Of a DNA stretch of 43,362 nt, positions 1-32,408 are shown one piece after another. This stretch comes from Macrostomum lignano (taxonomy: Eukaryota). The translations under genes were made by a program, and so were the position numbers. The stretch spans positions 1 through 43,362 of the forward strand of contig NIVC01004522.1 of the NCBI GenBank assembly GCA_002269645.1. The letters run 5' to 3'. The notes beneath the pieces are model-generated. The model was not told the origin of the DNA. It saw nothing but the letters and a program-made list of their open reading frames with translations, and did no database searches. Each line of letters begins with the position of its first letter. The first letter of the stretch is position 1.

Positions 1-1
1 T

Positions 2-14
2 AAGGCAGTACGTA
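2..14. repeat. Target-site duplication, left copy (AAGGCAGTACGTA)
   Basis: Identical to 3137-3149. Confidence 0.85.
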
Positions 15-3000
15 AGGCCTGACGGAGGGATGGGCCAAGCGGCTACGCCGCATGGCTCAAACTTCCGCCTTGGTCTCCACCAACTGACCATCCTCCGCTG
101 CCGGCCGAGCTCAGACTCCCGACGGCGGGCACAAGGCGAAGGCAGCAGCCGTACCCCAGTCGCTGGGGAGGAGGGCGGTGTAGCGCGGCTAGGTGACTCA
201 CCTGCCGTGGGCGCCGTGTCGCGCCTCCGCGGCGGCTGAGGAGACGGCTGAGCCTGAGCCAATGGAAAATTGGCGACTCAACTCTCACGCGATGAGGCTG
301 ATAATGAGTTGCTTTTGCCTCCCCTGGACAGTAGACATGACTGTCTCCCAGGGCATCTCACTACTTGCAGGTCAACGCAGCACAGCATTGCTGCTTCAGT
401 CAACCTATTGAAGCACACTGACCAAGACGCGCCAGGGATTATCCTTATCCAGGAACCTTGGACGCTAAGGGGCAGGCCCCAACATGTCCCCAACCGGCTA
501 CAGTGTTTACGACGCTGGCACCCGGGAGGGAAACCTGACACCAAGATCCTGCATCATGGTGTCCAGTTCTATTAACGCATGGCTCAGATCGGACGCTGTC
601 TACCAGGGACATCTGTGTCATCCAGTCTGAAGACATACTCCCTGGGAGGACTACCCTCATCGCCTCGGTCTATACCTACCGGGCGACGGCGAGAATGATC
701 CCAGTAGAGCTTGTCACACTGGTCGAGCTCTGCTCCACCAGGAATTATGAGCTGCTTGTGGCAGGCGATATCACGCCCACCTCACCCATGGGGCAGTTCT
801 GATATTAACCAGAGAGGTGAAGACTTCCTGGCTTATATCACTACTACAACCTTGAGTTCTGTAACTCGGTAATACCCCTACTTTCAATAACGGACGCCGA
901 TCGGAGGTGCTGGATGCCACCCTCGCCACGCTTCCAGAGTACTAGGGAGTGGCGGGTGCTTTCTGAGGCGTCCCTCTCCGATCACAAGTTCATCTCCACG
1001 CTGGCCAGCGCCCCGAAACGCAGGCCAGCTTTACTGGAAACGGAATGCAAGGAATACCGACTGGACGCGCCATCAGGCTTGCTCTGGAGGAGACCTATCG
1101 TTGCACTAGCGCTCCAGTCTCCATCAACAGTTGCGAGGAAGCAGATGAATTTGCGGCCGCACTTACGGACTCGCTCACTGCTGCCTTCGAAGCCTCATGC
1201 CCACTAAATGCATATAAAGGCAAACAGTCGGCCCATGGTGGAACCCGCAGCTTGGCGACCTCCGTCGCAGAGCCAAAAAGGCTTCACCGCAGGCCCCAAA
1301 AAACTAAAAACCTGGCCGACCAAACCGCCTACCTGAACTCTATCCACGAGTTCAAGAGGCAGGTTAGGAACGCCAAAACCAACAAGTGGCGCGAATACTG
1401 TGAGGAACTTGAGGGCTCCCGCCCCACCTCCAGAATCGTTAAAGTCCTCACCCTGGACAAAATGTCCAAACTCTCCTCAGTCAAGAGAGCCGACGGCTCG
1501 CTCACTGAGAACCCAGGAGGAACACTGGAAGCGATGCTAACAGCGTTTTTCCCGAACGAGCCAGCCAGGCCCGACCCCCCCCCCCTGACCACTCAGTGGG
1601 CGTCACGTACTGGCTGACTCAATCATCACGGAGGACCGCGTTCCTAAAGCAGTCTCCTTCAACCCTTTAAATCCCCAGGACCGGACGGCATTGTGCAAGC
1701 TTTCCTGCGAGAGGCGGTGAAATGCACCGGTTTCCTGCGTTACTTACGCCGGCCTGGTCTGGACCAGCGCCTTGCAGATTAAAACATGCAACGAAGCCCT
1801 TAAAAAGGTGCAGGGACGCGCGTGCCGCATGATTCTGAATGCCCCGCTCTCTGCTCCCTTTGACGGCCTCAACGCCTTCCTTTGCCTCCCGCCTCTGGAC
1901 ATCTTTGTCCGTCGCGAGGCTGCTAAAACCACCAGCCGGCTCATCGAGGCTGGCGTTAGCTTCAAGCCACAAAGAGCGATGGCGGAGCGCTAGCTCCTGC
2001 CGCACTCTGACCTGTGCCTTAAAGTTCTGGAGGAGAGCGGGAGTGCGGCTGTCCTTTCGGACGCTGAGCCGCGCTCCCTAAATCTCTAACAACGCTTTAA
2101 GGTCACTATCCCCGCCAGGGAGAACGCCAACGACAGCTGGGCCCCTCAGGAGGTTCACTGCTTCATTGACGGATCCTCCAAAGACGGTTTATCCGGCTTT
2201 GGAGTCTGTATCCTTATCAACGGCCGCGTGATCGCTACTCACGCCCAACACACTGGCAGACTCTCCAGCGTCTTCCAGAACGAAATCCTTGCCATCAGCT
2301 CCTGTGCAGCTGAGCTCCACTGCAGGGACTTCAAGGACAGAGGAATCTTCTTCCACTCTGACAGCCAGGCCGCTTTACAGGCCCTGTGTCACACCACTAC
2401 GAACTCCCGAACAGTCCGCGACTGTACCGGGCAGCTCAACAAGCTGGCTTGGAGGAACACCGTCCGGCTCACGTGGATCCCAGGACACACTGGGTTCAAA
2501 GGTAACGAGCTCGCCGACTCCCTCGCCAAGGCGGGTAGTTCTGGCTCGCTCCTTGGCCCTGTGCCCCTGGCCCCCATCCCCGCCACGGTCATTAATCGTG
2601 AGACATCCTGCACTAAAGCAGATGGGGTGGCATTTCCAACTGCCGCCAGTCCCGTGCTGCAGTGCCCAATTCATCCCTCAAGCTGCGGAGAATCCTTTTG
2701 AATCAAAATCGAAAAGATATCCGCGCTCTCATAATGACCTTCACAGGTCACGGTTGCTTTGCCAGGCACTGCTTTCTCCGAAGTGTTCGCCGGAGCGAAC
2801 TCTGCCCTTTCTGCAACCTCGAGAACGAAGACGCCAAGCACTTCGTCTGCTACTGCCCGGCCCTCAAACGAGACCGGCTCAACCACCTCGGGCCCAACCC
2901 GTCCCTGGACGACGCTTGCCGGCCCGAGAACATCCCACGGCTCATCCGGTTCCTCCGGGCTACCAAACGAGCCTCCGTCTTCCCCACCGAAGACAACGCT

Positions 3001-3136
3001 GCAGACAGGACCGGCAGACCTCCCTGACCGGCCCCGCGCCCTAGCCTTTGCGGGTCTTCTCAGGGATTAGTGGAATGGGCGACGCTCGCCTCCCCGCTGC
3101 GTCTTCGGACCGCCCTGCAGCTAAGTCAAGTAAGTC
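15..3136 (+). mobile_element. 5'-truncated non-LTR retrotransposon (APE + RNase H + C-terminal CCHC; LOA/Lian-like), internally deleted and frameshifted
   Basis: Flanked by identical 13-bp direct repeats AAGGCAGTACGTA (2-14, 3137-3149), with a short TAAGTCAAG-type repeat tail at 3122-3136. GC-rich relative to host DNA. Motifs across frames: APE (IILIQEPW, VAGD, SLSDHKFI), KSPGPDGI, VTYAGLVW..LKKVQGRACRMI..LPPLD, RNase H (FIDGS, SVFQNEILAI, FHSDSQAAL, WIPGHTGFKGNELADSLAK), CCHC (CPFCNLENEDAKHFVCYCP). Confidence 0.9.
337..3027 (+). pseudogene. Disrupted ORF2 (pol) of the non-LTR element: APE ~337-1000, linker, RT core absent, RNase H ~2150-2540, CCHC ~2800-2860
   Basis: ATG at 337 begins MTVSQGISLL..QHSIAASVNLLKH. 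The domain pieces lie in several ORFs (270-575, 914-1207, 1045-1617, 1772-1993, 2228-2701, 2662-3027) joined by frameshifts. No YADD-like motif is seen. Confidence 0.85.
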
Positions 3137-4179: not shown

Positions 4180-7167
4180 ATGCAGCAAGAAGTCGTTAGC
4201 GATGAACGTGGAGAACTTTTACATGTTGATTCTGATCAAGATAGCGAACAGAACCTCAGTAGCACTGCAGCTATAAACTCAGACAGTAATGAGCAACACA
4301 ATGCCGAAACGCATTGTACTTCACTTAAAGACAACTGGGAGTTGATTACTAAAGAGACCATTCAAAAATTGTCTCCCGGAGACGTGATAAGCAGAAAGTA
4401 CTGCGGATTCAGTTACAGGATGATTGTGGACAGCGTCGAAGTAAAAAAAGACGCAAACGAAAATTTTGAAAAGGCGACAATTAGTGCCATTTACTACGGT
4501 AGGCAGGGAATTAAACGCCGGATAGTTCGCGATGTTTTCAGTATTCAAGCGGATGGAAGCTCATCGGTCTTAAAGCCGAAATGTTGGCTTCAGCACCAGC
4601 CAAATGAATGGTGCTACTCACCTGAAGTTGTGGTTCAGCGAGCTCGGAGCCGTGTAAACGAAGCTCAGCACTCATTTTTTGGAAACATGGCTTCAGACTT
4701 CGTCAGGTGGTGCAAAACCAGGTGTTCCAGCCATCGGCCAGATAACTTAGTCCCGATTTACGTCTCTGAAGATAATAAGAATATGATTCACTCCGTGAAA
4801 TCAGGCGACCATCTGGAAGTCAAATGTGCAGGACGCGACAGATTGCACTGCAAGGTCTTGACGACCACTAAATTAAACAATTCAAAGTTTGAATTAACGA
4901 TGAGAGCTACTTCTGTTGATACAGGAACTAAGCACATCAGGATGGTTCACGAACGAAAAATTGAGCTGCAGAGAAACAAGTTAGTAAAAGTAAGCGTCAA
5001 CTTGCAAGGTATCGATTTGTCCAATCGCACTGAAAAAATAAACAACCTGATCTACAAGAATAAGCGAGCTAGAATGCACGATTTCTGCTTGCATCTGACC
5101 AACCCTAACATGTCGGATGAGGAATGGATGCAAACAGTGGTCGACGTGCCTAAAAGACATTGGAGTTTCCGAATTCGATTCTTTAAACCTACAAAGCCTG
5201 CCGAAAATCTGAACAAAGGAGACATTGTATATATTCAGGGCCATTACCAAGTTGTAACTAATGTAGCGTTCAACGATTCTAAAGTCGAAATTACTACTAT
5301 GCTGTATGGAAAAAAAGAATTAAAAGCCAATGAACCGATCGAAGTAAAGCTTGCCATTGAAGCTAAAGAACGGGACGCGATTCTCTGCGTACACAATGAC
5401 GCCGCATTAGACTGCCCTCTGGAAGGTGGAGGACGAAAGAAGCCAAGTTACACTTTCGAAAGAATCAAGGATTCAGCTCAGATACAGAAAGGGTGTACAA
5501 TCAGTATGAGAAGCGGATCCCCACTGTTTAAACACTGTATCGTTTCCAGTGTCGCAACAGACAATGAGAGTGCTACCGAATCTGAGAGTGCTTCTGATTC
5601 TGAGTTTTTTGTTGAATCTTCTGATATAGTATCTTTTAGTGCCATTTCATACGAACTAGGATCACTCATAGCAGAGAAAAGCTTCACTTTAAATGTCTCG
5701 AAGAGCACAATCTATCGAGTGACCTACAATGTCTCAGATAAAAGCATGTACTCCAGCAATGAAGTCGTCGAAAGAGCCCGCTCACGCCTGGGCGAGAGGC
5801 AGCACAACATCCAGTGGAACAGCAGAGGGGACTTCGCTCGCTGGTGTAGCATCAAGCACCAGAGTAATCGAGAACAGACCCGCGTCCCCGTCAACTCTGC
5901 TGATGAACTCCATGCATTCAAGCAGGGTCACGTTAGATTTTTGAAGCTCCTTCCGTACTCGCATCACGCAATTCTAAGGGATTGCAGCAAAGTAGAAGGA
6001 TGCAATGATATCTTGAGAGTTAGCATGTACGAGAACAATGTTGCTTATAAATGTGTCAGAAAAGAGCAGCTGAATATTTCAGAGAACGAAACCGTTCGAC
6101 GAGTAAGGTACGCAGAACGTCGCGAAGTCAACTCTGCCAGTGTCGAGCAGCTACTCGGCCTCACATTCTTAAACGCGGACGATGATCGGCTTGGGTTCAG
6201 CGGCCCAATCGTTAAGAAGTGTGGCAGCAGAGTAAAGAGTGAGGATTTCTGTTGCTGGATTAAAACCAGCTACTGCGAGAGAGGAGAAAAGGCAGTTCAA
6301 GAGTTGTTCGATCAGAGTACCCGAAAACAGGTGGAAGTGGAGGAGATTGGAAGAGACAGCGTCAATATTTTTGACCACATCATTCTCACTCGCAAAGCTA
6401 ACGGAAAGGACATTGAGGTTCATTTCATTGTCACTAAGTGGGATTCAATTGCGTGCACTGGTGTCGGTATGACGTACGAGTTTTCCGCTGAAAAGGTCGG
6501 CTTAAGATTTAAGAAGTTCGATGGCTTTCTGCGAGTGACGGGCCCGGGTCACATTGAGAAAGTGGTGCACAACTCCGAGCTCAACTGGGACCAAATTGAT
6601 GCCAAGTTTAAAGAGCTGGAAGGAATTGAGGAATACAGCCTACTTTTTAACAACTGTGAACATTTTGTTAATTACCTGATTTATGGCCGCCTTACCTGCT
6701 CTCAGTTAAGCCGGGTGACAGGCCTTGGAACAAAGTATGTACTGAGATTTTTGCGCACTATAATGGTTTATGTTTTTCGATTTTTTAAAGGATTTGGAAA
6801 ACAATTCTCATCATTTTCTCCTGTTGGTGATGTGATTGGCACCATTCCAGATGGATTAACATGGTGGTGCGAGGGTTTAGGCCTTGGTTTCATTGCGCTG
6901 ATGATCATTAGCTCGATCGTCTGGCTTCGAAAACGTCAAGCAGACTTGGCCATGCCTGATCACGAGTTTAAATATCGATTGATCAACATCCTGTCCATGG
7001 GAGGCTGTGCGCTTCTAGGAGCTGTCTTAGCATTCGGACTGGTTCACGTGTTGCTACTGTCAAGTTGGCCAGCAATTTGCCTTGGTGTCGGAATCGGTTC
7101 ATTTGCGGCAGTAGTCGGATACTTCGCTCCTAAGCTCTGGGCACTTTTAAAATGCCTTAGGCCTTAG
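4180..7167 (+). CDS. Multi-LRAT-domain membrane protein A (995 aa): six tandem LRAT/H-NC-like modules, last with intact H...NCEHF, about 3 C-terminal TM helices
   Basis: Single uninterrupted ORF. Terminal module has EVHF (His 6421-6423) and YSLLFNNCEHFVNYLIYG (Cys 6655-6657). Upstream modules keep GDVI/GDHL/GDIV starts and EVVxRARSRxxE...FxxWC ends. Hydrophobic C-terminus (GLGLGFIALMIISSIVWL etc.). ATG directly follows TTACTTCAG. Confidence 0.88.
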   Translation: MQQEVVSDERGELLHVDSDQDSEQNLSSTAAINSDSNEQHNAETHCTSLKDNWELITKETIQKLSPGDVISRKYCGFSYRMIVDSVEVKKDANENFEKATISAIYYGRQGIKRRIVRDVFSIQADGSSSVLKPKCWLQHQPNEWCYSPEVVVQRARSRVNEAQHSFFGNMASDFVRWCKTRCSSHRPDNLVPIYVSEDNKNMIHSVKSGDHLEVKCAGRDRLHCKVLTTTKLNNSKFELTMRATSVDTGTKHIRMVHERKIELQRNKLVKVSVNLQGIDLSNRTEKINNLIYKNKRARMHDFCLHLTNPNMSDEEWMQTVVDVPKRHWSFRIRFFKPTKPAENLNKGDIVYIQGHYQVVTNVAFNDSKVEITTMLYGKKELKANEPIEVKLAIEAKERDAILCVHNDAALDCPLEGGGRKKPSYTFERIKDSAQIQKGCTISMRSGSPLFKHCIVSSVATDNESATESESASDSEFFVESSDIVSFSAISYELGSLIAEKSFTLNVSKSTIYRVTYNVSDKSMYSSNEVVERARSRLGERQHNIQWNSRGDFARWCSIKHQSNREQTRVPVNSADELHAFKQGHVRFLKLLPYSHHAILRDCSKVEGCNDILRVSMYENNVAYKCVRKEQLNISENETVRRVRYAERREVNSASVEQLLGLTFLNADDDRLGFSGPIVKKCGSRVKSEDFCCWIKTSYCERGEKAVQELFDQSTRKQVEVEEIGRDSVNIFDHIILTRKANGKDIEVHFIVTKWDSIACTGVGMTYEFSAEKVGLRFKKFDGFLRVTGPGHIEKVVHNSELNWDQIDAKFKELEGIEEYSLLFNNCEHFVNYLIYGRLTCSQLSRVTGLGTKYVLRFLRTIMVYVFRFFKGFGKQFSSFSPVGDVIGTIPDGLTWWCEGLGLGFIALMIISSIVWLRKRQADLAMPDHEFKYRLINILSMGGCALLGAVLAFGLVHVLLLSSWPAICLGVGIGSFAAVVGYFAPKLWALLKCLRP

Positions 7168-9827
7168 CTAAAACTACGATAATAGACGTTATGGCGTCTG
7201 CTGACTTCAAAATTCTTCAACGGAATATTTCCCAAGTACGTTCGTTACTATCGCCTGTTAGTTTTTTTCTGCCGTGATTTCAGAAATGCGTCAGAACGCT
7301 TGGCTCTAAAAACTCTAAACTCTAATAGTGAAATCGAACTATGTACCTTCACCAAAAAACTCGCTTTATAAACAATTCTTTTTATTTCTAAGGTGAAATA
7401 TTCAATCATTAATTTTCGTTCCGCATAGTATAGCTATAATAGTATACCAGATGTAAGTGTTGTTTCCGGTGTCATGAATGCTATTTCACCGACTCCCAGT
7501 CCGTATAAGCATATCTATTTACAATAACAAGAGTAATGGTAAAGATTTTCAATAACAATTTCAAATAACAAGTCTGTTATTCAAGATTTTTGCAAGTTTT
7601 AGTGGTGTATTTGGTTTCCATGTTTTCAATGACTTTATTTAAAATTAGCGACTACGCTCTCGTACAACGTTTTTCGCAAATTTACTTTAAGTGGCTTAAA
7701 AATATGAATGCGACACGTCTTTTCGCAATTGACACTGTATCGGTTTGATTATTCTGTAATTAGAAAAGCAAATGAACGAGCGTATTCTCTAAACTTTAAT
7801 CAAGATATTATTCCTTTATAGTTTTAATGATTCTGTGCGTCAATTTATTCTATCTAGGCTATGGTTCTAATAATATGCTATTTTGTTTAATTCGATTCGT
7901 TTCCAAGAAATTCTACTCATATTTGAACATTCAACTAGTAGTAATTTCTGTAAGCGCATGGCAGTCTTGGACGTGGATCAACCAGTGTATGCAAGATCGA
8001 AAGCATAGCAGTTTAGTTTAAATCTTCAGTGTACGCAATTAAATAATAACAAAATTAATGATTACTATTTAGTTACTAGCAAATCGTCTAGGCCTGACAT
8101 GCGTAGCCAGTTAAATATATATTCTACTACTAGTACTACTATCGTTCCCTACTCTAGCCTCCGCAAAGTAAATATACCGGACTCGTTACAGGGTGCTTCT
8201 GTTAAAGATACAATATTTTTCCGAGGCTATCCATCGCACAGACAATCTTGACTGATTTTGCAGTTTTGATAATTGTTAAATCCCTGAACACCTAGATAAA
8301 GAGTACGAGGTACAGTACGGCTCGTAGTACAGGTATTCAGGTCCTTGCTCGCCTGCGTCAGGACGCGAGTGGTCACAGCTTCCCGTAGTACGAAGGCATC
8401 TGGACGATCCTACGTGACTGATGTTCGCGTCAGAACGCTTGGACACCAAACCACGAGTATCAGCCCCTTATACGCTCGTGTAGTTCTCCGGTTTTTCATT
8501 TGACGTCCTAATTTCGTCCAGTGTAGTTTGATCAGTCATACTTAAGAGGGCTTAAAATCAACATCGTGTTGCTGTTGAGATCTTTCTGCGTTCTTTTCAG
8601 TCTTAAACGCAAAATAGTAACAAGACTCAAGTGTTTAAGAGATTTCTAAACAGCTTAGATGCCTGGTCCATGCTATATATTTTATTATCTTTCGTTCCCT
8701 TAACGCATGGTTAGCAACGGCAGGGGTTTAAATAAACAAACACATGCAACAAATTAAATTAAAATAAAATAGTAGGTTCGCTACGGGGGCGAGGATAGAT
8801 TTTTTAGTATCAGTATTTTGGCTCCATTGAGTGAGTCTTGAGTAATTTTATCTGCTTTTTTGCGGTTGCTATGCTTCCCGGGGTTGGTCGTTGGTTTTCG
8901 AGCTTTATCTCGCCTGCCAGCTAAATCTTCTCGCCGTCTTGCTTTAACTGGCACCTCGGCTGTTCATTAACGTAATCTCACCCCCACTTGTATCTGGAAT
9001 GGATGGTGGCTGTGATCTTATCAACCCCGCTGCTGACCTCTTTGCTTTTTTCTTTTTGCTCTTTTAACCTGGCCTTGCCTAATCAGCTAGCCTGGCCTCG
9101 GCTTGGCTTTTTTCTGGTCCCTTCTTGCGGATTTCTAAGCCCTACGTACAGGCAATTATTCTACAGAAACAATAGTTGCTTTTTTGCAAAAGAAATCTCA
9201 TAAAAATTCATTTCTAAAGTTTTTGCTTTCGTTTAATGAAGAGCCCGTGAGCAGTAGCTCAACCATCGTCAACCATACCATAGTTGTTCGAATCGTGACC
9301 TCTCGCGGTTTATGCTACTGATTTTATTATATTAAATATTATTTCGATTATTTTAGTGGATTGCTGGTTTATTTAATGATATTTAGTGAAAAAACGGTTT
9401 AAAACATTAATCCTCCTTGTGTTTCCTTGATATGTGCTAGGGCAAGACTCCCCATGAGAGGCAAGACTCCTATATTTCCTATATTCTAGTTTCCCCTTAG
9501 TTCCCCCTTACCTTGAATTCCCTTCAGTTGAAATTTTCTAAGTCAAGAAATATCACAAACGGATGCTTCTCTGACCCAACTGCTCTTTACTCATAACGTT
9601 TCCCACCAAAACCTGATTAGTAATTACTGATTAGTCTCATATCTCATTCTTATATCTCATTCTCATATCTCACAGTCTCTGCTTGCTTTTAATTGTCAAT
9701 CAGTCTAACACCCCAAGTCTAATAATATGTCGAGCGCTGAACCGTGTAAGGCCATTCCCAGATGAAGGTTTCAGCATTTTTTCAAGCATCTAATTGCCTC
9801 GTGAGGTCAGTCAAAAAAGAGCGAAAT

Positions 9828-10160
<333 letters not shown>

Positions 10161-10289
10161 CCTAAAAGAAAGGGACAGAACCCATGCTATTCATTATTTT
10201 ACTAAAATGTTTGGGGGCCTCAGATTCTGCAGACTCAGACTCTGCATTGCAGTATGCACTGGATTGTGCATCTATAGATGCCATGGTTA

Positions 10290-10720
10290 TCGGAGTGTTG
10301 GGGAACCAACAGGACTAGGAATGGAAGCTTCCGTACATCACCTGGGCCTATAAAACCTCGGTGCACAGCACCACCGGCCTCAGCCCATATAGTAGGCCTT
10401 CAAGGCTGGCCACCCAGACTGCATGGCTCTTGACAGCTGGCTGATAACGGCGACCGGCCGGCAGCGGACGGTGGACATCGCGGCTTCCTGCAGCGGACTC
10501 AGAAAACCCTGGCAGTGCACCGTTGACTCGGTGCATGGCCAGCTGCGGCGTGCGCAGATCGAGCGGAACCGGCTCGCCAACCAGGACTGCCATATTGTGC
10601 CGTTCTTGGAGGGCCAGCTCGTGGTGCTCTGCAACTAAGTGCGGCCAGACGCGGAGCCTGAGTGACAAGTGGAAAGGGTCGTACCGAGTCCTGAGCACCT
10701 GACTACCTGCAGCTTCCGTC
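10290..10720 (+). mobile_element. Degenerate Ty3/Gypsy integrase C-terminal fragment (core end plus GPY/F module)
   Basis: From 10301: GNQQD*EWKLPYITWAYKTSVHSTTGLSPY (W-x-x-L-P...AYN...H..TG.SP motif). Later PFLEGQLVVL and RSLSDKWKGSYRVL (GPY/F). Stops and frameshifts present. Confidence 0.8.
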
Positions 10721-10754
10721 TTCGTCATCACTGGAGCTTCCATCCGCTGTCGAC

Positions 10755-11160
10755 AAAGGGGAAAGTGATGTAGTCGACTTGTTAGTGCGCAGGGCTCTGT
10801 AGGGTGCCCGTGCAAGCGATGTCTTTGGGGTGAGGGTTGCTTGTTATCGCATGCATGTTGGTAGTGGGTGCACTCAGCCCCCGTTCTAGTTCAAATATAT
10901 TGGCGTGCGACAGTGAGGTGGGCCTCACGCGTTTTTGGGTAATCATTCTTAAACCACGCTCTTATGGCTCGCACTATCAATGACAGGATAGACAAAAAAG
11001 AAGTGCATTCTTGTAGAAGTTGTTTCGCTGTGATAAGCTCGAGTTAATAAAAGTTTCTTCGCGTCAAACAAGCAGACAGTTTTAAAGCCTATAGCAGTGT
11101 TTTAAGCTTCATTACCCAAAAAGGTACACTTGAATAACTGCTTATTGATTTTCTTCTACA
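10755..11160 (+). mobile_element. Putative polypurine tract and 3' LTR of the Gypsy relic
   Basis: AAAGGGGAAAG (10755-10765) follows the integrase fragment. TGTAG at 10769 pairs with CTACA ending at 11160, and AATAAA lies at 11046. No second LTR is present in the window to confirm the ends. Confidence 0.45.
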
Positions 11161-12332
11161 AACTTCTGCATTGGTAAGCAGCTAAAACATTCCTCTATTT
11201 AGTTATAGTGACGACTGACTCTAAGACTGATGATTTATAATTCAGTCTTATGATAGTACTCATTTTATTCATTGATTGAAGCCCGTAAATTTTAGCCCAG
11301 TAAAGTTGTTGACATAATACGAGCGTAAACCCATTAAAAAACAAGGCAATTTTTTGTGACTAATTTCGTTTTTTCAAATGGTTGTCAAAATATAACACAA
11401 CCATGTAAATAGCTAATCGTTGCGGTGTCTCTGTACAAGTCAAGTAATCGAAGGACAACAACAAAAACAACAACAAAATACTTCACCCGTCAGCCACGCA
11501 GTGGAAAGAAAGGGGGGAGAAGTCACAGAGCGCGTCTCTGGGTCATAGCCCTCAGAAAGTCACCTACAGCTTGGTCCGGGGCGCCAGCATCGTTAGGACG
11601 CTGCACTTTTAGCACGTGATCCAAAATCTCACGTTCTGGACTTCCAAATTTCAATTGTAGCCAAGCACGCCCCACATTGCACTAATAAGCTTATCAATGC
11701 GAAAATCTTTAAGCAGTCTCGCAGGACAGTGTCTCTGTGTTGCCAGTTGGCAAGGCTCCAGATACTGTTTTGTTTTCTAAACCGGTTTCGCGAAGATTTG
11801 TTTTATTTAATTAGGCTAAATGGGGTTTGGCCAAGGACAAAATTCGATCAAGAAAAAGCTTTGCTAGAAAAATGCGATGATGGGAGCACGAGAATCGGCC
11901 GCAGGGAGATTTGCCCACCGAGCGTTTCGTGCCGAACATAGAAAAGAAAACCTACAAGAAACAGTTTGATCTGGTAAATTTCTTTATTCGCTGCCGGAAA
12001 TACGACAAAAACTCGGCGGGCAATTCTCTTGGACCCCGATAAGACATGGATATAGCGACTTCCAAAACATTATTTACGTCTTTTGGGACTTTATTCGACT
12101 ATATTTATTATTAGCCCAGAAAATATTTGAACCCGTGTGACTTATGTGAGGACACAAGCCTTTCTCTGGAGCTGTATCACAATTTTTTCGTATTGCGCAT
12201 CGAAAACCGGTCTCTAGAGCAAAATCTGAAATCTGACCTTCTACATTAGTTCTCCTTGGCAATGTGCTACATCCATATTCAAGGACCACTAATTGCCGAA
12301 ATTAGCTTTCTAAAAAACCCGGACAATTTCAG

Positions 12333-15300
12333 ATGCAGGCACTCGAAGGCTCGAAGACTGCACAGCGGCTGCCCCTTCAACAAGAGGCTGCAGCAGCTGT
12401 GGTGGCCGCCCAGCCGCCCGGCACCCCCGAGGCAGCAGCTCTGCAAGCTGAGAGACCTTCACCGGTAACAGGCTCAATTCAGAGCTTCGAAACTTTAACG
12501 CCGGAATCGATTCGAAATGTAAAGCCTGGAGATGTCATCAAAGCGTCAGGACGTTCTGAAGAAATCGTTGTTAAAGTTGAAGTCAAAGACGGATTCTTTA
12601 CATTTTCGACAATTTATCCCAAACTATGCAGAGTTTTCGGCCAAATTGAGAGACGAGTAATCAAAGACATATTAATAGTTAAAATTATAAATTCTAAAAG
12701 ATCAAAGCAGCTGAAACCCAGTTGCCAACTTCGACACTTTCCAAAATCGGGCTGCCATGCTCTTGACGAAGTTGTCTGGAGAGCTCGAAGTCTCTTGAAC
12801 GAGAAACGCCTTACTAATAAGTCAGGTTTCATACTTTGGTGCAAGACCAAAGACCAATCTCACAGGAAAAATTGTACCGTGCCAATTTATCTGCCTGGGA
12901 ATTTCGAAATCCACCAAGTGAAAGTTGGCGATCATTTGAGTCTTAAGCACGACTCTGGTTCAATTCATGCAGTCGTACGAAGTAGCCAAGAGATGTGCGA
13001 GGACATTTATTTACTATCGTTGAGTGTTTCCACGCAGGACTTGATGAAGGATCGAATTGCCTTTGTAAACATTTCTACGCGAAAATTTCTACAATCGAAA
13101 GAATCGAATGAGCGCGTTCCAGTTGTAATATCGGTATCAAAGTGCGTGGAGACTAAGGAATTTCTCCACAGGATCGAATTGATGCGCGGCCTCGCGTATC
13201 CGAGGCGCATTTCGACTCTGCAGTTTTGCCTTCTTCTCACCGACTCGAGTCGCCACGGGCAGGACTGGAGGCAGCAAGTCGCACAGGTGTCGAATCAGAG
13301 TAGACCGATTCGACCATTGACCCGAAAAATTGAAGCGAAAAATCTTCAACGAGGCGACATCATTTTTGTTGACGATGCCTACAGAGTAGTCTGCAGTGTA
13401 GATAGCGACAAGGATGAAGTCAGCGTTAAATTAGTCAACTACGTTGAAGTCGACCACGAAGATTGCAAGACTTGCACGCTAAAGTATCTGATAAAAAAGG
13501 AAGAGACGGAAACAACTCTGTGTGTGCATAATGACAACACCGCTGATTGCCCTTTGGACTTAGAAGAATCATCGCCGGTAAATCTCGCAGCCATCTGCTC
13601 AGAGGAACCGGTAACCCTCCAGTTGCTTCAAAAGCTACAGAAAGGTGACGTCATTTGCCTGTGGTACACTGGCAAATGGCACAGGGTTATCGTGAAAAAT
13701 ACATTGTCACCGCTATTCATTACGGATCGAAATCGTGGCTTGACGGTAAAGCAGTGATCAGAGAAGACTTTGTTTTTACGAGTAAATATGACAGACCGGG
13801 AACTAAGCAGGTGCATCCGAAGTGCTTTCTCTGCCACTTCTCGGATCTCTGGTGCCACGAGCCCGATGTTGTGGTTGACAGAGCTCGAAGCCGCCTCAAC
13901 GAGCAGGAATACTCTCTGATTGCTAACTGTGGCACTCGGTTTGTCATGTGGTGTAAGACCAAGTCCATCAGCCACAGAGCTGACAACTCGGTGCCCATAT
14001 TTCTAGATGGCTTTCACACTCACGAAATTAAAGAAGGTGATCATCTTGAATTTAGCTGTGGTCTAAAAAACAGACTTCACGGAGAAGTGACCAAAGTAAC
14101 TAAACTGAATAATGGGCGAAAACTTTTTCTCGAATTGCAAGTAATCAAGCCCCATGAATTGCATTACGTGCACACAAGCGAACTAGTGCTCAAAAGGGAT
14201 GAGGCAGTGACTCGAGTCATTCAGTATCAGTCTCGTGTCATCAGTGAAGCTGAATTGACGCGACGCATTGAGTTCATAGAAAATCTGGCCTTCAACCACA
14301 GTGAAAGTTCATTCAAAATTTGTCACCTTGTGATGAACAACGATAGAAGATTTGATGATTGGAAAGACAGCATTTGGGATGCATTGACTCAAAATGCAGT
14401 GCAAAGCAATCGGCCCGAATTGGTTGAGAGTGTTACTCCCAATCATGACCATGATGGCCTTAGAGTTGGCGACATCATACACGTGAATGGTGTCTACCGG
14501 GTTGTTGCGGGCGTCAGTGCCGGCAGCGGTCAGTCATCCGGACAAGTCAGCATTAAAACGCTCCACTATGGCTCTCAAAAACAAAATTTGTGTGTGTCAA
14601 AATTAAAGTACATCATTGATTCTGAAGAGAAGGACGCCAAGCTGTGCGTACACTATGATCCCAGCTTAAACTGCCAATTGTATGGCGGTGGTAGCCAGGC
14701 ACCAGCACATATGGCTGAAGAAGTACATGATATGCAAAGCATTTCAGCTGGCTCGGTCATTTCTTGGAGAGACAATCGGCATTCTCTGTACCAGCACGCT
14801 GTGGTGGTCAGAAACCCGGTGCTACCGGATGCGAACAATCCCCACTGCGCTAAAATCGATGTCATTTTTTACAGAGGTTCGTGGAGAGGTCAGATTGAGA
14901 GGCAAACTTTATCAGTAGACTTGAAGAAGCAGAAAATTTACACGATTAAGTACAACGTACTGGAAGGCTGCGTTCTCACCCCAGAAGAGGTGATTAAAAG
15001 AGCCAACAGCCGACTGAAAGAGAAGCAGCACAACTTCCAGTGGAACAGCAGTCGCGACTTTGCTCGCTGGTGCAGCATCAAGCATAGCAGCAACAGGGAG
15101 CAGTGCGCAGTTCCCGTACACTCGGCGAAAGACCTTCTTAAGTTCGAGAGAGGCCACATAAAGTTCTACAAGTCGCCTTGCTTTTACAAGCACGAAGCAA
15201 TTATGCGCAGCTGCTCTGCAGTAGATGGCTGCAGCGATATTGTTCGGGTCGAGTTGTACGAAAACAATCACGATCAGAAACAGGTGCGATTTGAAAAGCT

Positions 15301-16447
15301 CGTCATTGGCCCGGGTGAGAGCTCGATTCGACGCGTCAACTACTACGGCTTTGAAGAAGCCACTGGTTTTGCTATTCTGCAGGAGCTGACGGACTGCACG
15401 TTTTTGAATGCCGACGACGACAGGAAGGGATGGACTGCGAAGGCCAAGAAGTTTGGCAGCAAGGTTTGCAGTCGGGACTTTTGCTTCTGGCTGAGAAATA
15501 ATCATGATGCCGATCGGATGTGCGGCATTCAAAGCCTGTTCGGTACTGACCTGGCCGAAATTCAGGACAAAATGAAGAAACTTATTAGAGAAAAATCACT
15601 AAAGGTTTCGGAAAGTAATCAAAAAGTTGAACTCGAAGACAGAGTTGATAGACGCAGTCTCAGGCAATACGATCACATTATTCTGAATCGGATGGTCAAC
15701 GGAGTAGTTTCTGAGGCTGATTTCATTTTAACCGAGTGGGATGCTGCCACTTGTTCCGGCGTTGGGGTCACGTACGCATTGCCGCAGGATCCAAAAGACA
15801 TGGGAGTCGTCAAGTTTCAAGGATTTCTTCGAGTTGAAGACAATCAGATCGAGAAGGTCGTGCACAACTCCGATTTAGACTGGAATCAGATCGACGCCAA
15901 ATTCAATCAACTGTGTGGCAGTAGGAGTTACAGTTTACTGTTTAACAACTGCGAACACTTTGTCAACTATTTAATTTATGGCCGGGTGAGCAGTACTCAG
16001 CTGAATAATCTAGCCTGGCGTTTTAGCCACTTTTTACCCAACGCGGTGCAAAGCATTGCTACTGCTGCAGTTCGAATCCTACGATTAGTCTACACCTTGA
16101 TGGAGACGGGAAGTTTGAACACAGCTGCTTCACTTCCCTTAGTGCTGATTGAGGGCGGCTCGGTGCTTTTAATTGCCCTTTTGGGTATTGCATCATATCT
16201 GCTTTTGCAGCATCGCAAAGCGAACTTCAATATGCCTCAGCAGGAGTTCCTCGGCAGAAGACGTGACATCTTGTGCCGCACTTTGGTTCCAATATTTAGC
16301 GTAATCATTGTTGGAGCCGTCATTCACACTGCCCCGGTCAGTGCCCCCATTATTGGCAGCGCGGCTGGAGTCGGAGCACTGGCTGTTGGTCTTGCTTACT
16401 TCCTGCCAAGCATGCGCGCCATAATGATGGCGCGAATGAAACCGTAG
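12333..16447 (+). CDS. Multi-LRAT-domain membrane protein B (about 1371 aa if fused): nine modules, one -1 frameshift near 13695-13702
   Basis: ORF 12333-13757 encodes three modules plus the start of a fourth (LQKGDVICLWYTGKWHRVIVK). ORF 13655-16447 continues that module (IVTAIHYG...VVDRARSRLNE) through YSLLFNNCEHFVNYLIYG (Cys 15950-15952) and the TM helices. ATG directly follows CAATTTCAG. It may be an intact gene with an assembly indel or a real frameshifted allele. Confidence 0.75.
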
Positions 16448-16589
16448 CAGATTCACTGCAACCTTTTATTGAATAATTTTTTAATTACGAATAATTATTA
16501 GATATGTGTACCAACAGTCATGGACAACTGAAGCAAACCTTGAGCAGGCCGGATTGCTATTATGAAATTTCAAAGCACTCGAGGGTTAG

Positions 16590-16631
16590 GGAGCCTCATG
16601 TGGCCCGCAGGCCGAAGTTTTCTGATCCCTG
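16590..16631. mobile_element. Terminal remnant resembling hAT/Charlie-type non-autonomous elements
   Basis: TGGCCCGCAGGCCGAAGTTTTCTGATCCCTG resembles the common hAT MITE end TGGCCCGCGGGCCG.AGTTTG...CCCTG. The partner end was not found. Confidence 0.35.
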
Positions 16632-17587
16632 ATTTAAGCTATTAAGTTTTTTAAACATAAAAAACTGGAGTACAAGCTCAGACGATACACTCAGCTTTCC
16701 TAGAAATTTTGCGCTAGATGCCGGTTAAACCAACGTATACATATACTTGCCGCATTGCTAATGCCTAATTAATATGCTCTAATATGTGACCTAATTTTTC
16801 AATTTACGACCCTATTCAGCCTTCTCTAAAGCATACTAAATTCACTACGGCAGACATACGTTCTTTGGCCTCCAGGTCATTTCGAGTGTATATAGCGTCC
16901 TTCTGCTTCAGTTGTCCATTCGTCTAGAAACGTTCTATAGACAAAGAATTATTTCAATTTCATATCCTCTTTAAACGGTACTGCAGCCAAATGCATGCGT
17001 ATTATTCAGAAAAAAAATTCCTGTGTTTTTAAAAAATGAAGTACGAGTAATAAATATTACATGAATATTGGTGATGGCTAATTAAAATCGTGTAGTAATT
17101 TTTGTTTTAATAGAAACTTAATCTGACTAAATTAATAAGTGAATATTATGCAGTTTTTTTTCAAATGGTTATCTTTTTTTCAACGCTGTTAAATTCATAG
17201 AAAAAAGTTTGACTTTTTGTTTAAACACGCTCGTAGTACTGCTGGACTTCATCCGTTTTGTTTTTACACGTGAAAGCAGCGATTTTCTGAGTGTAAGCAA
17301 CTCTTGCTCAAACGGACAGCGGATACAAAAGTAATCATTTCTATTTTTAACATATTAAAATTCTTAAATTTCTTATCTAATGCCCTACCTATATGTACTT
17401 CATGCGGAAAATGTGTTATCAAAGCCGCCAGATGTACAGAGATTTCGCATCAAGCTTCAGGCGTGTTTTTATATGTCAGAGCTATTTATAACATGTCAGA
17501 GATACGAGCGTTTATATTTATTAGCTATCTTGCTTGCTTTTTGTAATGCACAGTGCACAGGATTTTCTGGCGAGGCGCTTGACCGCT

Positions 17588-20500
17588 ATGGTAAGTTCTT
17601 TCGCTTGTTACATGTAACTAAAAATCGACAATGTTATACACACAATACCACGAATATCTTTTCTACTTTTAGGAACAAACTCAGAACCAGGGAATTTTCG
17701 TTTCCGCTGTAGCCGAAAACACGACTGAAAGTGATGCTGTTGAAGCTGACGAACTCGCTACCGCTTGTGATGCGCCCTGCGAATCAACCGAGTCACAAGC
17801 CGATACGGCACCACGGGTGTATTGCTACGAGGAGAGGCTCACGTGCGAATCAATCAAGAATGTTGCCATTGGCGACGTACTAGAAATCCGATACTTTGAA
17901 CTGCCGCACAAAATTATCGTGGAGAACACGAGCATCGTTGACACTGAGCAGGAGTTGATCATCACCATCGATGCCATTCACTACGGAAGAGACTGGCTTT
18001 CTGTCCAGGTAATGAGAGAAAAATTTCAATTCATTGCTCGAAAAGACTCATTGGATCCCGGTGGGGCGCTGAGCAGGAAATGCTGGAAGTGTCACTTCCC
18101 ACCAACCTGGTGCCACCCACCCGATGTGGTAGTGCAAAGAGCTCGAAGTCGGCTGAACGAACGAGAGCACTCGGTCATTGACAACAGGGCGTCTCATTTT
18201 GCATTTTGGTGCAAGACCCAGTCGGTTAGCAATCGTGCGAACAATATTGTACCGATCTTTGTAGCCGCTAATCAGCACATTCACGAAGTGAAAGTTGGCG
18301 ACCATTTGAATTTTGCGACAGACGGTGAAATTGAATTACACGGAGAAGTTAGAGATGCTGTCAAGGCGAGTGAGTCGCAGGTTTTGTTAACTATGCTAGT
18401 GTCGAGTAGACACGTGAACAGAGAAATAATCAACTCTGCGCACATTTGTGAAACTAGAATTCAAAAACCAGTCCAAGTTGTAAAATCAGCTGCAATTGGT
18501 CTGACTAGTGAAGATTTACAATGGCGAATCAGAATGATACAGGATATTTCCTACAAGCGTTTGGTTGGAAAACTTGCCTTCTGTCTACACCTGACCAATC
18601 CTAACTTAAGCAGGGAAGACTGGCTTTGTCGAGCTATCCAGGTTCCAAACGTCACGAAAGAAACTGCGCAACCACTCTGTAAGACCATTCGCCCAGAGCT
18701 GTTGAATCCAGGCGACATCATACTGCATGACGGCATATACTCAGTGGTGTCTGCAGTCAGATGCGATGGCTCAGGTGCTCTGATAACTAAAATTCAGTAC
18801 TCTGCCCGTCGAGTAAACAAAAATGCTCATAACTGCCTGTTTGAAATAAAAATTGCTATCGAAAAATACGAAAGACAGGCTGTGCTTTGCGTTCACAAAG
18901 ACATTTTCCGAGATTGTCATCTGTACGGTGGAGGACTTGAAACACCCAGCTACACTGTAACCAAGGTGACGAGTGTGAATGAAATTTACAAAGGGTGCGT
19001 CATTAGCACCAGAGACGGCTTAGTCTTCAAACACTTGGTTGTCACCGATTGTCCCAAAATAATTAGTACACCGGCAATGAAAAACCAAGTGATGTTTAGC
19101 GCGATTTCCTACAATGTAGGACCTTCTATGTTGCTCGGAAAAAATTCCGTCGCCGAGAGCAGCTACACAATAAATTTAAGAACAACGCCAGTTTACGTTA
19201 TGAAGTACTGTGTCTCGAACGAGGTTCTCTACTCAACTGAGGAGGTGGTTCTTAGGGCTCGCTCGCGTCTGGGAGAGAGACAGCACAACTTCCAGTGGAA
19301 CAGCGGCCGAGACTTAGCTCGATGGTGCAGCATCAAGCACCAGAGTAATTTGGAACAGGGCATCGTTCCTGTTACCTCGGCAGACGATCTGCATCGTTTC
19401 CAAAGAGGACACATCAAATTCTTGAAGAAGCCGAAGTCTCTCTACGCGCACAATGTTCTTCTCAAAGAGTGCAGTAAAGTTGAAGACTGCGACGATGTGC
19501 TGAGAGTGATATACTATGAAAATAACGTCGTTTTCAAGCATGTCCGCATTGAGAAGCTGGACATTGGAGAAGATGAGCACCTCCAAAGAGTTCGGTACGC
19601 AAGCTGTCGAGAATGGAACCAAGCAGAACTAGAAAATCTGATTGATCATACGTTTCTAAATGCGGATGACGATCGGCTGGGCTACCTAGGAATGCAAGGC
19701 AGCAGAGTGACTAGCCAAGATTTCTGCTTCTGGATAAAAACTCGCTTCTCAAAGGATGGCATCAAGGCAGTCAAAAACTTACTCGGCGAGGAGTTGGGGC
19801 TGTTAAGGAACGAACTGAAAGTCAAGAGGAAGGACACGGAAACCATCGTAGGTGGACGAAGCCTAAAACCGTTGGATCACATCGTTCTTAGGCGCACTGT
19901 AGCTGGTAAGGAAGCAGAAGTTCACTTCGTCATCACGAGCTGGGATGCAAATTTATCTACCGGCTATGGAGTAACTTACGAATTTCCCGTAAAGAAGACC
20001 GAAATGGGATTCTACGAGTTTAAAGGCTTTCTCAGATTAACTGGCCCAGGTCAGATCGAGAAAGTGGTGCACAACTCAGAATTCAATTGGGATCTAATTC
20101 AAGAAAAGATTCGAGATCTGCGCGGAGGCGAAGATTACAGCATTCCGTTCAACAATTGCGAGCACTTTGTCAACTACTTGATTTATGGCAGAGTTGTCTG
20201 TCTGCAGCTAGTTAGGCACTCGAGGAGGCTGTTTGGCTTTGTACCGAGTTTTCTACACCATTTAGCTGCCGATGGCATTAACTTCCTGAAGTTTGCAATG
20301 CACCACGCGTCTGGCTTAAGAAAAGTCGGCGTTAAAATTCCAATTTTTGAGAGCGTTGGCCTAGTTCTTAACCTTGTAATCGCCGGCTGTCGATTTCTGC
20401 AACTAATCAGGCGTCGGGCTCGAACAGCCATGCCACACGAAGAGTTTTCGATGCGAAGACGTTATATTTTCGTGGACGCGATTTCGTCAACATTCGGGGT

Positions 20501-20627
20501 TTTATTGGCTCTTGTTTTGATCGCAGTGCAGGCTACTGTATTTACACCGCTCACTCTGTGTTCCGCACTCATCGGGTACGCGTTGTTGAAGCTGATTCCC
20601 TTGGTAAAATCAATTTTTGTGCCTTGA
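17588..20627 (+). CDS. Multi-LRAT-domain membrane protein C (985 aa): join(17588..17590,17673..20627)
   Basis: ATG|GTAAGT donor at 17591 and CTACTTTTAG acceptor at 17672 (82-nt phase-0 intron). Exon 2 is open from 17673 (EQTQNQG...). Same six-module layout as A: EVHF (His 19923-19925), FNNCEHFVNYLIYG (Cys 20157-20159), hydrophobic C-terminus. Confidence 0.85.
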
Positions 20628-21970: not shown

Positions 21971-29217
<7,247 letters not shown>

Positions 29218-29364: not shown

Positions 29365-29775
29365 CAAGAATTACCCCTAGATATTTCTAAGAATCACCCG
29401 TAGATATTTATATGAATTGCCCTAGATGTTTCTAAGAATTGTCCCTAAATATTTCTAAGAATTACCCCTAGATATTTATATGAATTACCCTTAGATATTT
29501 CTGAGAATCACCCCCAGATATTTATTAGAACTGCCCTAGATATTTCTAAGAATTGCCTTATATGTTTCTAAGAATTGTCCCTACATATTTCTAAGAATTA
29601 TCCCTAGATATTTATATGAATTACCCTTAGATATTTCTGAGAATCACCCCCAGATATTTGTTAGAATTGCCCTAGATATTTCTAAGAATTGCGCCTACAT
29701 ATTTCTAAGAATTGCCCCTACATATTTATATTACTTGTCAATTCATATTTTTAAGATTGTCCCTAGATATTTATA
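29365..29775. repeat. Degenerate ~21-22-bp minisatellite (AATTGCCCTAGATATTTCTAAG) just 3' of the Rab2 stop
   Basis: Directly visible. Confidence 0.9.

Positions 29776-30676: not shown

Positions 30677-32408
<1,732 letters not shown>

Follow-up and report, generated by a model that had tools for sequence, protein, structure and literature searches.

The 43,362-bp Macrostomum lignano contig NIVC01004522.1 (assembly GCA_002269645.1), the whole of which constitutes the window analyzed here, carries a tandem trio of plus-strand paralogues, designated A, B, and C, whose products contain LRAT-like modules—six per protein, nine in B, numbered from M1 to M6 in the six-module form—followed by a hydrophobic C-terminal region. 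The reading that we favor, and to which we would assign a probability of roughly 60%, is that these proteins are tail-anchored acyl hydrolases or acyltransferases of the PLAAT type in which a scaffold-forming array of pseudo-LRAT domains precedes the active one, and that their genes form a tandem birth-and-death cluster in M. lignano. The novelty would lie in the layout of a known enzyme family: no paper on these genes or on multi-LRAT architectures was found in the searchable literature, an absence that is no proof, and the suggestion in a preliminary description of this DNA that the system is possibly uncharacterized is to that extent supported. The parts of the three genes are the following, where ORF denotes an open reading frame, aa amino acids, and nt nucleotides.

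4180–7167, plus strand: gene A, a single unbroken ORF of 995 aa, with an acidic disordered N-terminus, six LRAT-like modules, and a hydrophobic C-terminal region.
12333–13757, plus strand: gene B, ORF 1, 474 aa, containing an extra M1-M2-M3 block and the beginning of the next M1.
13655–16447, plus strand: gene B, ORF 2 (B2), 930 aa, with homology from nt 13694, running from a partial M1 through M6 and the transmembrane (TM) region.
13692–13693, plus strand: site of a 22-bp deletion in gene B, located by blastn of window 13600–13800 against 11259–11457 of L001, the contig holding the second genomic copy, and by three-frame translation.
17546–17590, plus strand: gene C, exon 1, 15 codons located by tblastn of aa 1–15 of the deposited model P0002, with the ATG at 17546 and a GTAAGT donor at 17591.
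17591–17672, plus strand: gene C, intron of 82 nt, GT-AG, confirmed in the sequence.
17673–20627, plus strand: gene C, exon 2, encoding six modules and the TM region, 100% identical to P0002 aa 16–999.

The window is sparse in ORFs, and the sets listed above bear out the earlier claim of three same-strand paralogues. The sizes of about 1000 to 1370 aa that had been attributed to them apply to A (995 aa) and to C (999 aa, as in P0002, which model adds exon 1 and the intron to a bare ORF at 17817–20627), whereas B would reach about 1370 aa only if its frameshift were read through. In BLASTP comparisons identity amounted to 41% over 968 aa between A and C (E = 0) and to 36% over 941 aa between A and B2 (E = 6e-177), so that the similarity of the three is far beyond chance; and, because all the alignments among A, B2, and C were collinear over their full length, the module order is common to the paralogues, which agrees with their description as divergent proteins of the same organization. 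The two ORFs of gene B overlap in different frames. ORF 1 repeats, at 31% identity, the stretch of ~400 aa with which A, C, and B2 begin, and the greater length of gene B is explained by the extra M1-M2-M3 block, 31% identical to the block that follows it.

We partitioned the gene A product, downstream from an acidic disordered N-terminus (aa 1–51), into six modules and a membrane region, as listed here.

4333–4764, plus strand: M1, aa 52–195, a pseudo-domain in which Ala takes the place of the nucleophile (GNMASDF); Pfam LRAT E = 0.011; hundreds of repeat units from bivalves and hemichordates match it.
4765–5184, plus strand: M2, aa 196–335, keeping the GDHL...LH start and having no catalytic motif; the weakest of the LRAT-like modules.
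5185–5454, plus strand: M3, aa 336–425, truncated, with the beta-sheet half only and without the NC helix.
5455–5895, plus strand: M4, aa 426–572, an M1-type pseudo-domain with Arg at the nucleophile position (WNSRGDF); Pfam LRAT E = 8e-4.
5896–6315, plus strand: M5, aa 573–712, a pseudo-domain keeping the H-box His (YSHHAIL), the nucleophile being replaced by Ser (KSEDFCCW), and bearing an insert, TFLNADDDRLG.
6316–6699, plus strand: M6, aa 713–840, the sole intact PLAAT/LRAT-type domain; Pfam LRAT alone 33.3 bits, E = 6.5e-8.
6700–7164, plus strand: membrane region, aa 841–995, with two to three hydrophobic helices and an amphipathic helix.

The string FNNCEHFVNYLIYG, with which each module array had been said to end, occurs in exact form once per gene, at nt 6646–6687 in A, 15941–15982 in B, and 20148–20189 in C, and supplies the presumptive nucleophile of a triad formed in A by His733, His748, and Cys826 (codon 6655–6657); in B by His674, an Asp, and Cys766 (codon 15950–15952); and in C by His736, a His, and Cys829 (codon 20157–20159), the His/Asp members being assigned by strand position and not by residue-level alignment to PLAAT3. 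NCEHF, His733, and Cys826 are invariant across the three paralogues, and the first His is so in seven M6 sequences, the motifs around the histidines being DHI(I/V)L...EVHF in A and C and DHIIL...EADF in B. When the M6 profile was compared with solved structures, the closest were PLAAT2 (4dpz, E = 1.8e-6) and PLAAT3 (4dot, 7zom, and others, ~3e-5); FNNCEHFVNYLIYG aligned to Cys113 of the PLAAT2/3 structure sequences and was modeled in a helix spanning residues 826–835. PLAAT3 is inactive once any member of its triad is replaced by Ala or Ser, and human PLAAT1 naturally has an Asn at the second His position (PMC11989323); the Asp of B in M6 is plausible because that Asn indicates that a polar substitute is tolerated there.

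The full set of catalytic residues is kept in M6 only, in agreement with the earlier view that a single active terminal module lies beside a hydrophobic anchor. Elsewhere the nucleophile position is occupied by Ala or Gly in M1, by Arg, Gly, or Ser in M4, and by Ser in M5; and one or both histidines are also lost in most of the upstream modules, with triad positions such as Tyr-Tyr-Ala and Lys-Ser-Arg in the repeats of A, or x-His-Gly and His-Phe-Ser in those of B2. M1 to M5, lacking the nucleophile and mostly one or both histidines as well, would therefore be pseudoenzyme domains.

How many of these modules are of the LRAT type had to be approached with profiles of different depth. The Pfam LRAT family (PF04970, gathering cut-off 24.3 bits) recognizes all three proteins, with 56.8 bits for A, 61.2 for B2, and 54.2 for C, but responds, among the six modules, to M1, M4, and M6 alone, with the E values listed above. 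Nothing was detected by Pfam LRAT in M2, M3, or M5, for which modules family-specific profiles were needed. Against a repeat profile composed of 245 units collected from relatives, in a search seeded by M1 and M4, hhalign gave probabilities of 100% for M1, 99.9% for M4, and 95% for M6; of 96% for M5 over 106 columns, from the H-box to the S-x-D-F-x-x-W helix; of 89.5% for M2 over 82 columns; and of 87.5% for M3 over 42 columns, corresponding to the beta half. M1 and M4 matched each other at 99.6% with deeper alignments, theirs having been the only likeness to emerge from direct hhalign of shallow module alignments, and the direct comparison of M2, M3, and M5 with M6 was not significant. A hidden Markov model (HMM) of the repeat scored 18.4 bits with M3, 15.7 with M5, and 9.8–11.8 with M2, versus a maximum of 7.9 in 880 shuffles; and reciprocal HMMs, built from flatworm-only M2, M3, and M5, matched non-flatworm LRAT-like domains in register at 17.3, 24.8, and 19.0 bits, respectively, the corresponding maxima for reversed sequences being 5.1, 9.1, and 11.8 bits. 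To judge by these profiles, M1, M4, and M6 may be firmly assigned to the LRAT type; M5 and the truncated M3 probably belong to it; and M2 is likely, though weakly supported, as a further member. The strings of six or nine LRAT-like modules proposed at the outset can accordingly be upheld firmly for M1, M4, and M6, with moderate confidence for M3 and M5, and weakly for M2. We rejected the simple duplication of an [M1-M2-M3] block into [M4-M5-M6], only M1 and M4 being demonstrably alike. Pfam scans of the paralogues and relatives returned no informative accessory domain, matches to eIF4G and ANTH in Mlig000755 having been disregarded as low-complexity.

An AlphaFold model of A, obtained with an 11-sequence paralogue alignment, had a mean predicted local distance difference test score (pLDDT) of 72.9, with modules mostly at 75–90, whereas the model based on the three window paralogues alone (mean pLDDT 37) was unusable. 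In the former, each module comprises five to six strands followed by two helices—five strands and then helices in M2—with the exception of M3, which has a single short helix; the acidic N-termini (pLDDT <35) and an acidic insert of M4 (aa 462–479, pLDDT <50) are predicted to be disordered. The strand-helix pattern is thus repeated along the model, and the whole-chain Foldseek matches are sub-threshold: in BFVD the search retrieved a Catovirus "lecithin retinol acyltransferase" at a probability of 1.00, with E = 0.12 and a template-modeling score of 0.43 normalized to target length. Since Foldseek was run on the whole chain only, the LRAT fold of the individual modules, a circularly permuted NlpC/P60 fold with which the order of strands and helices in the model agrees, rests on the sequence profiles together with the secondary-structure pattern.

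The upstream modules are well conserved among the paralogues, M4 and M5 being 42–57% identical (M5 45–57%) and the catalytic M6 48–56%; which similarity between M4/M5 and M6 argues that the upstream modules are not decaying spacers. The least conserved parts are M2 (19–31%) and the membrane region (23–28%). Between the two genomic copies described below, the ratio of nonsynonymous to synonymous substitution rates (dN/dS) was 0.62 for A, 0.39 for B, and 0.32 for C, suggesting mild purifying selection on all three.

In A the Kyte-Doolittle scan has two strong hydrophobic peaks, at aa 898–916 and 942–960, and a weaker one near 965–985, while AlphaFold draws four helices at 841–878, 891–923, 927–958, and 964–992 (pLDDT 50–70); so that the approximately three hydrophobic helices formerly counted correspond to two strong and one weaker by the first method and to four by the second. 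These helices, two to four in number versus one in the PLAATs, begin ~60 residues past the NC motif, and a loop motif, R-x-A-x3-MP-x2-EF-x2-R, is shared unchanged by all three proteins. The Kyte-Doolittle scan contained no N-terminal hydrophobic segment, strong hydrophobic helices appearing only after M6. Five family members from outside the flatworms were weakly matched by an HMM of the TM region (E = 2.5e-5 to 8e-3), the matches falling in the TM region that follows their catalytic domain. Most simply, the chain of modules, of ~840 residues, would be cytosolic and the protein held by its C-terminal helical anchor, with the active domain nearest the bilayer.

If so, M6, lying next to the anchor, might attack one of the ester-bound acyl chains of a phospholipid in the membrane where that anchor is embedded and form a thioester intermediate, from which the acyl chain would be passed either to water, as in a phospholipase A1/A2, or to an acceptor lipid, as in acyl transfer. 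The five pseudo-domains, or eight in B, would provide a noncatalytic but conserved scaffold binding lipid, protein, or the active domain itself, and might so control where and when the active domain works. We infer the chemistry of M6 from its homology with the PLAAT and LRAT enzymes; any role of the pseudo-domain array, including the regulation, multimerization, or targeting suggested earlier, is conjecture, and a role in defence, drawn like one in membrane rupture from what the PLAATs do in vertebrates (PMC11989323), would be pure conjecture.

With respect to known systems, the PLAATs are proteins of 162–279 aa with an H-box, an NC domain, a hydrophobic tail, and one catalytic domain, whose Cys-His-His triad sustains phospholipase A1/A2 and coenzyme A (CoA)-independent acyltransferase activities and which can destroy organelle membranes; N-acyl-lipid synthesis, vitamin A storage, and the breakdown of eye-lens organelles are among the roles recorded for PLAAT and LRAT, and a link with infections by viruses and parasites has been noted for PLAAT4 (PMC11989323). 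M6 shares with PLAAT1–5 the NCEHFVN-L-YG helix, the upstream H-box His, the second His or polar residue, and the hydrophobic segment that follows; the window proteins differ, however, in their length (995–1379 aa), in the five to eight additional pseudo-domains upstream, and in an anchor of two to four helices instead of one tail, and outside the NC helix the identity of M6 is too low for the search with profiles of the Protein Data Bank (PDB) to align. With LRAT and PF04970 the window proteins share the gathering score (passed with 54–61 bits), the superfamily, and presumably the acyl-thioester chemistry; unlike LRAT, they are multi-domain and devoid of an N-terminal TM helix, and the LRAT-specific insert was not seen in them. 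A different point of comparison is provided by LRATD1 and LRATD2 (FAM84A/B), vertebrate LRAT-domain pseudoenzymes that have lost the catalytic Cys and are single-domain, soluble, and presumably noncatalytic. These resemble M1 to M5, by description only, in the lost Cys, but do not combine an array with an active domain and an anchor in the membrane.

The closest architectures came from a profile search run exhaustively over 1.84 billion representative proteins, which yielded 450 relatives, most of them matching the M1 or M4 segment repeatedly; of two word-indexed homology searches, the first had returned only the proteins of the window itself and the second, with the 11-sequence alignment, only the deposited protein P0001 (BOX15_Mlig034298g1), to which the gene A product is 99% identical. 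Among those representatives the six-module, C-terminally anchored form was seen in M. lignano only, where the whole architecture or some part of it is encoded under at least nine gene identifiers (Mlig034298, 027402, 000580, 011640, 012089, 023781/031065, 006580, 014099, and 000755), some of them being duplicate copies in a partly duplicated genome. The consensus of the repeats, GDvI..Y...HhAIV...vIHY...EVV.RARSRLGE...sN.S.HFA.WCK, keeps both histidines and replaces the catalytic Cys by Ser, and the repeat HMM also matches the canonical N-terminal LRAT domains of bivalve proteins. In the usual layout of the Mytilus, Mercenaria, and Potamilus members, one His-His-Cys LRAT domain is followed by two to three TM helices and then by 3 to 11 repeats, nearly always His-His-Ser; among 174 proteins scanned we counted 143 His-His-Ser, 89 His-His-Cys, and 17 His-His-Ala units. 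The strict keeping of His-His-Ser in the non-flatworm repeats (P0007, P0008, P0014, P0171, and others) suggests that some function of the pocket has been retained. The hemichordate Ptychodera flava, for its part, has proteins with eight modules and then two C-terminal TM helices, with the repeats before those helices as in Macrostomum.

The bivalve and Ptychodera proteins therefore resemble those of the window in possessing units of the M1/M4 type (30–38% identity between window and bivalve-type units), one or more His-His-Cys domains, two to three TM helices, and 3 to 11 repeats; which description differs for the bivalves in the order of the parts, the repeats coming last there and first in Macrostomum, and in the triads, which are His-His-Ser in the bivalve repeats and degenerate in those of Macrostomum, only some of the latter keeping His or Ser. 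Outside Macrostomum the M2, M3, and M5 types are only weakly recognizable. On the strength of these alignments, the window genes would form a branch, divergent and rearranged, within a bilaterian family that has no name and whose members bear no database label other than "LRAT domain-containing" or "uncharacterized"; the lineage expansion that had been proposed holds with regard to the at least nine Mlig identifiers, but the layout of repeats, TM helices, and an LRAT domain occurs in bivalves and P. flava as well. In two shorter paralogues from Mlig000755 (P0012 and P0161), the last third of the membrane profile (positions 96–153) has four to five consecutive matches, as if the segment of the C-terminal helix had itself been amplified in those proteins.

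A second M. lignano contig, NIVC01001606.1 (L001), holds the same cluster at 94–99% nucleotide identity, with genes A and C present in both genomic copies as intact ORFs of 995–999 aa. Gene B is in L001 one intact ORF of 1379 aa (P0003), to whose residues 1–452 and 459–1379 the ORFs 1 and 2 of the window have 88.6 and 93.6% identity, respectively. The 22 bp missing from the window lie between short GAAAA repeats, and their loss shifts the reading frame of gene B, so that the window gene would be either a recent pseudogene or the product of an assembly error; that the extra 22 bp in L001 might be an intron was rejected, the segment being too short and read in frame as EKLAREN inside a module. 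In L001 the C-terminal half of gene B is present once more between B and C, at 14848–17098, as a partial duplicate with a frameshift, to which the 3' part of the window gene B is closer (96.4%) than to the intact B of L001 (94.1%); this finding suggests unequal crossing-over or deletion and, therefore, a cluster that is being remodeled by unequal exchange.

The surroundings of the trio are of a different nature. At 1–3044 the window is GC-rich (51–58%) and contains the remnant of a retrotransposon without long terminal repeats (non-LTR), with an ORF at 2228–2701 that matches Pfam RNase_H (E = 3e-8) and short ORFs in several frames nearby, which arrangement suggests a decayed element. The interval from gene A to gene B contains an (AG)166 microsatellite, at 9828–10160; only ~30% GC is found in the 22–26-kb region. 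At 30683–32408, a 38-bp satellite with ~45 copies, a GAGAGA run inside, and very strong GC and AT skew yields three overlapping, spurious minus-strand ORFs of 570–633 aa that are not genes. Four minisatellites lie 3' of the cluster at 26742–27560, 28292–28743, 29366–29730, and 40506–41016, with periods of 31, 20, 23/114, and 18/35. In L001 a small GTPase gene with Arf/Ras/Roc Pfam matches is located 3' of the cluster, at 23544–27101, to which region the window aligns at ~24–25.8 kb with 95% identity.

Several of the observations weigh against a tail-anchored enzyme with a scaffold of pseudo-domains. The Foldseek search of the PDB with the whole-chain model gave nothing below E = 0.1 and no PLAAT among the top matches, those of moderate probability (up to 0.82) being SH3-like barrels such as eIF5A, PWWP, and Tudor; the support for M2 is weak; and the dN/dS values, based as they are on few substitutions (33 in A and 21 in C), speak for mild constraint only. 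The topology is ambiguous, since the first strong hydrophobic helix is followed by a basic loop that might face either side of the membrane, and gene B is broken in the window copy by the 22-bp frameshift. Furthermore, the deposited P0001 (871 aa) lacks the membrane helices: it departs from the gene A ORF at about residue 859, and its final 21 residues are out of frame. We found no canonical GT-AG boundaries that would reproduce P0001 within about 6757–6850 of the window, so that this model may be an annotation artifact or a soluble isoform; the continuous ORF of gene A was preferred because it keeps the region conserved with B and C, and an exact look-up of its 995-aa product in the public assemblies gave no record.

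The barrel matches in particular raise the alternative that the upstream modules are small beta-barrels of the SH3, Tudor, or PWWP kind, unrelated to LRAT, and that only one to three of the domains are true LRAT domains, to which alternative the silence of Pfam in M2, M3, and M5 and the nonsignificant hhalign of those modules with M6 would also lend themselves. We nevertheless hold it to be very doubtful, inasmuch as in the family profiles M5, M3, and M2 align with LRAT-like repeats, the register being kept from the initial GD-x-I...H motif and, in M5, through the (S)-x-D/H-F-x-x-W helix, with scores above those of the shuffled and reversed controls; the strand-then-helix pattern is, in addition, the one common to M1, M4, and M6, and the beta half of LRAT, as a small antiparallel sheet, could itself draw barrel matches. 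Nor does M6 need to act on lipids: LRAT, PPPDE (C97), and the NlpC/P60 amidases belong to one papain-like cluster with a shared permuted core (PMC10318531), and the NCEHF region of M6 gave weak Pfam matches to Peptidase_C97 (E = 0.056–0.18), so that this module might be a thiol hydrolase of proteins or peptides—a deacylase, an amidase, or an enzyme resembling a deubiquitinase—like its NlpC/P60 and PPPDE relatives. Such a substrate strikes us as improbable to much the same degree, because NCEHFVN-L-YG and the best matches are specific to PLAAT/LRAT (E = 1.8e-6 versus 0.06–0.18 for C97) and a position beside the membrane helices suits an interfacial lipid substrate.

That the cluster might be decaying and nonfunctional, consisting of pseudogenes or annotation noise in a repeat-rich region, could be argued from the frameshift in the window gene B, the additional frameshifted partial duplicate in the second copy, and the flanking retroelement and satellite DNA; yet A and C are intact in both copies and B (1379 aa) in the other one, dN/dS is below 1 for all three pairs, and His733 and Cys826 have remained invariant despite a paralogue identity of 36–41%, all of which makes that possibility remote in the extreme. 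A role as autoinhibited effectors of membrane rupture or pathogen restriction, whose array would serve as the sensor of a trigger or as a decoy, cf. PLAAT3 on damaged organelles, has several indications in its favor. The PLAATs degrade organelle membranes by means of their PLA1/A2 activity and their C-terminal hydrophobic domain, and PLAAT4 is associated with infection (PMC11989323); the window genes have undergone a lineage-specific expansion and tandem duplication, with copy-number differences between the genomic copies; their dN/dS values, at 0.3–0.6, are relatively high; and their relatives are strongly expanded in the bivalves, where many gene families are similarly expanded. The window, however, contains no known immune genes linked to the trio, whose flanks are occupied by the decayed retroelement and the satellites; a permanent anchor of several helices is unlike the recruitable single-helix tail of PLAAT3; and expansion by itself does not demonstrate immunity. 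We accordingly regard such effectors as unlikely. Less likely still would be a wider proposal, that of an ancient, undescribed bilaterian system in which one membrane enzyme of the PLAAT type is permanently coupled to an array of LRAT-derived domains, with a conserved His-His-Ser pocket in those of bivalves and hemichordates, such arrays sensing a ligand or an acyl chain, or oligomerizing, and in that way gating the remodeling or destruction of membrane lipids, possibly in innate defence or organelle clearance.

The interest of the tail-anchored enzyme with its pseudo-LRAT scaffold, as the reading that we prefer, is that the known PLAAT and LRAT enzymes are small and single-domain, while here a single active domain would be joined to five to eight conserved, inactive copies of it and to an anchor of several helices; which arrangement, if the reading is correct, would constitute a natural case of pseudoenzyme domains located within the same chain as their active relative. 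The ancient gated array, were it to prove true, would represent a new regulatory principle for the PLAAT family. The His-His-Ser repeats of the bivalve and hemichordate proteins raise, for their part, the question of what the LRAT fold does without catalysis, to which is added that of how PLAAT activity is restrained at the membrane; and, since M. lignano is genetically tractable, knock-down and localization of these proteins should be feasible.

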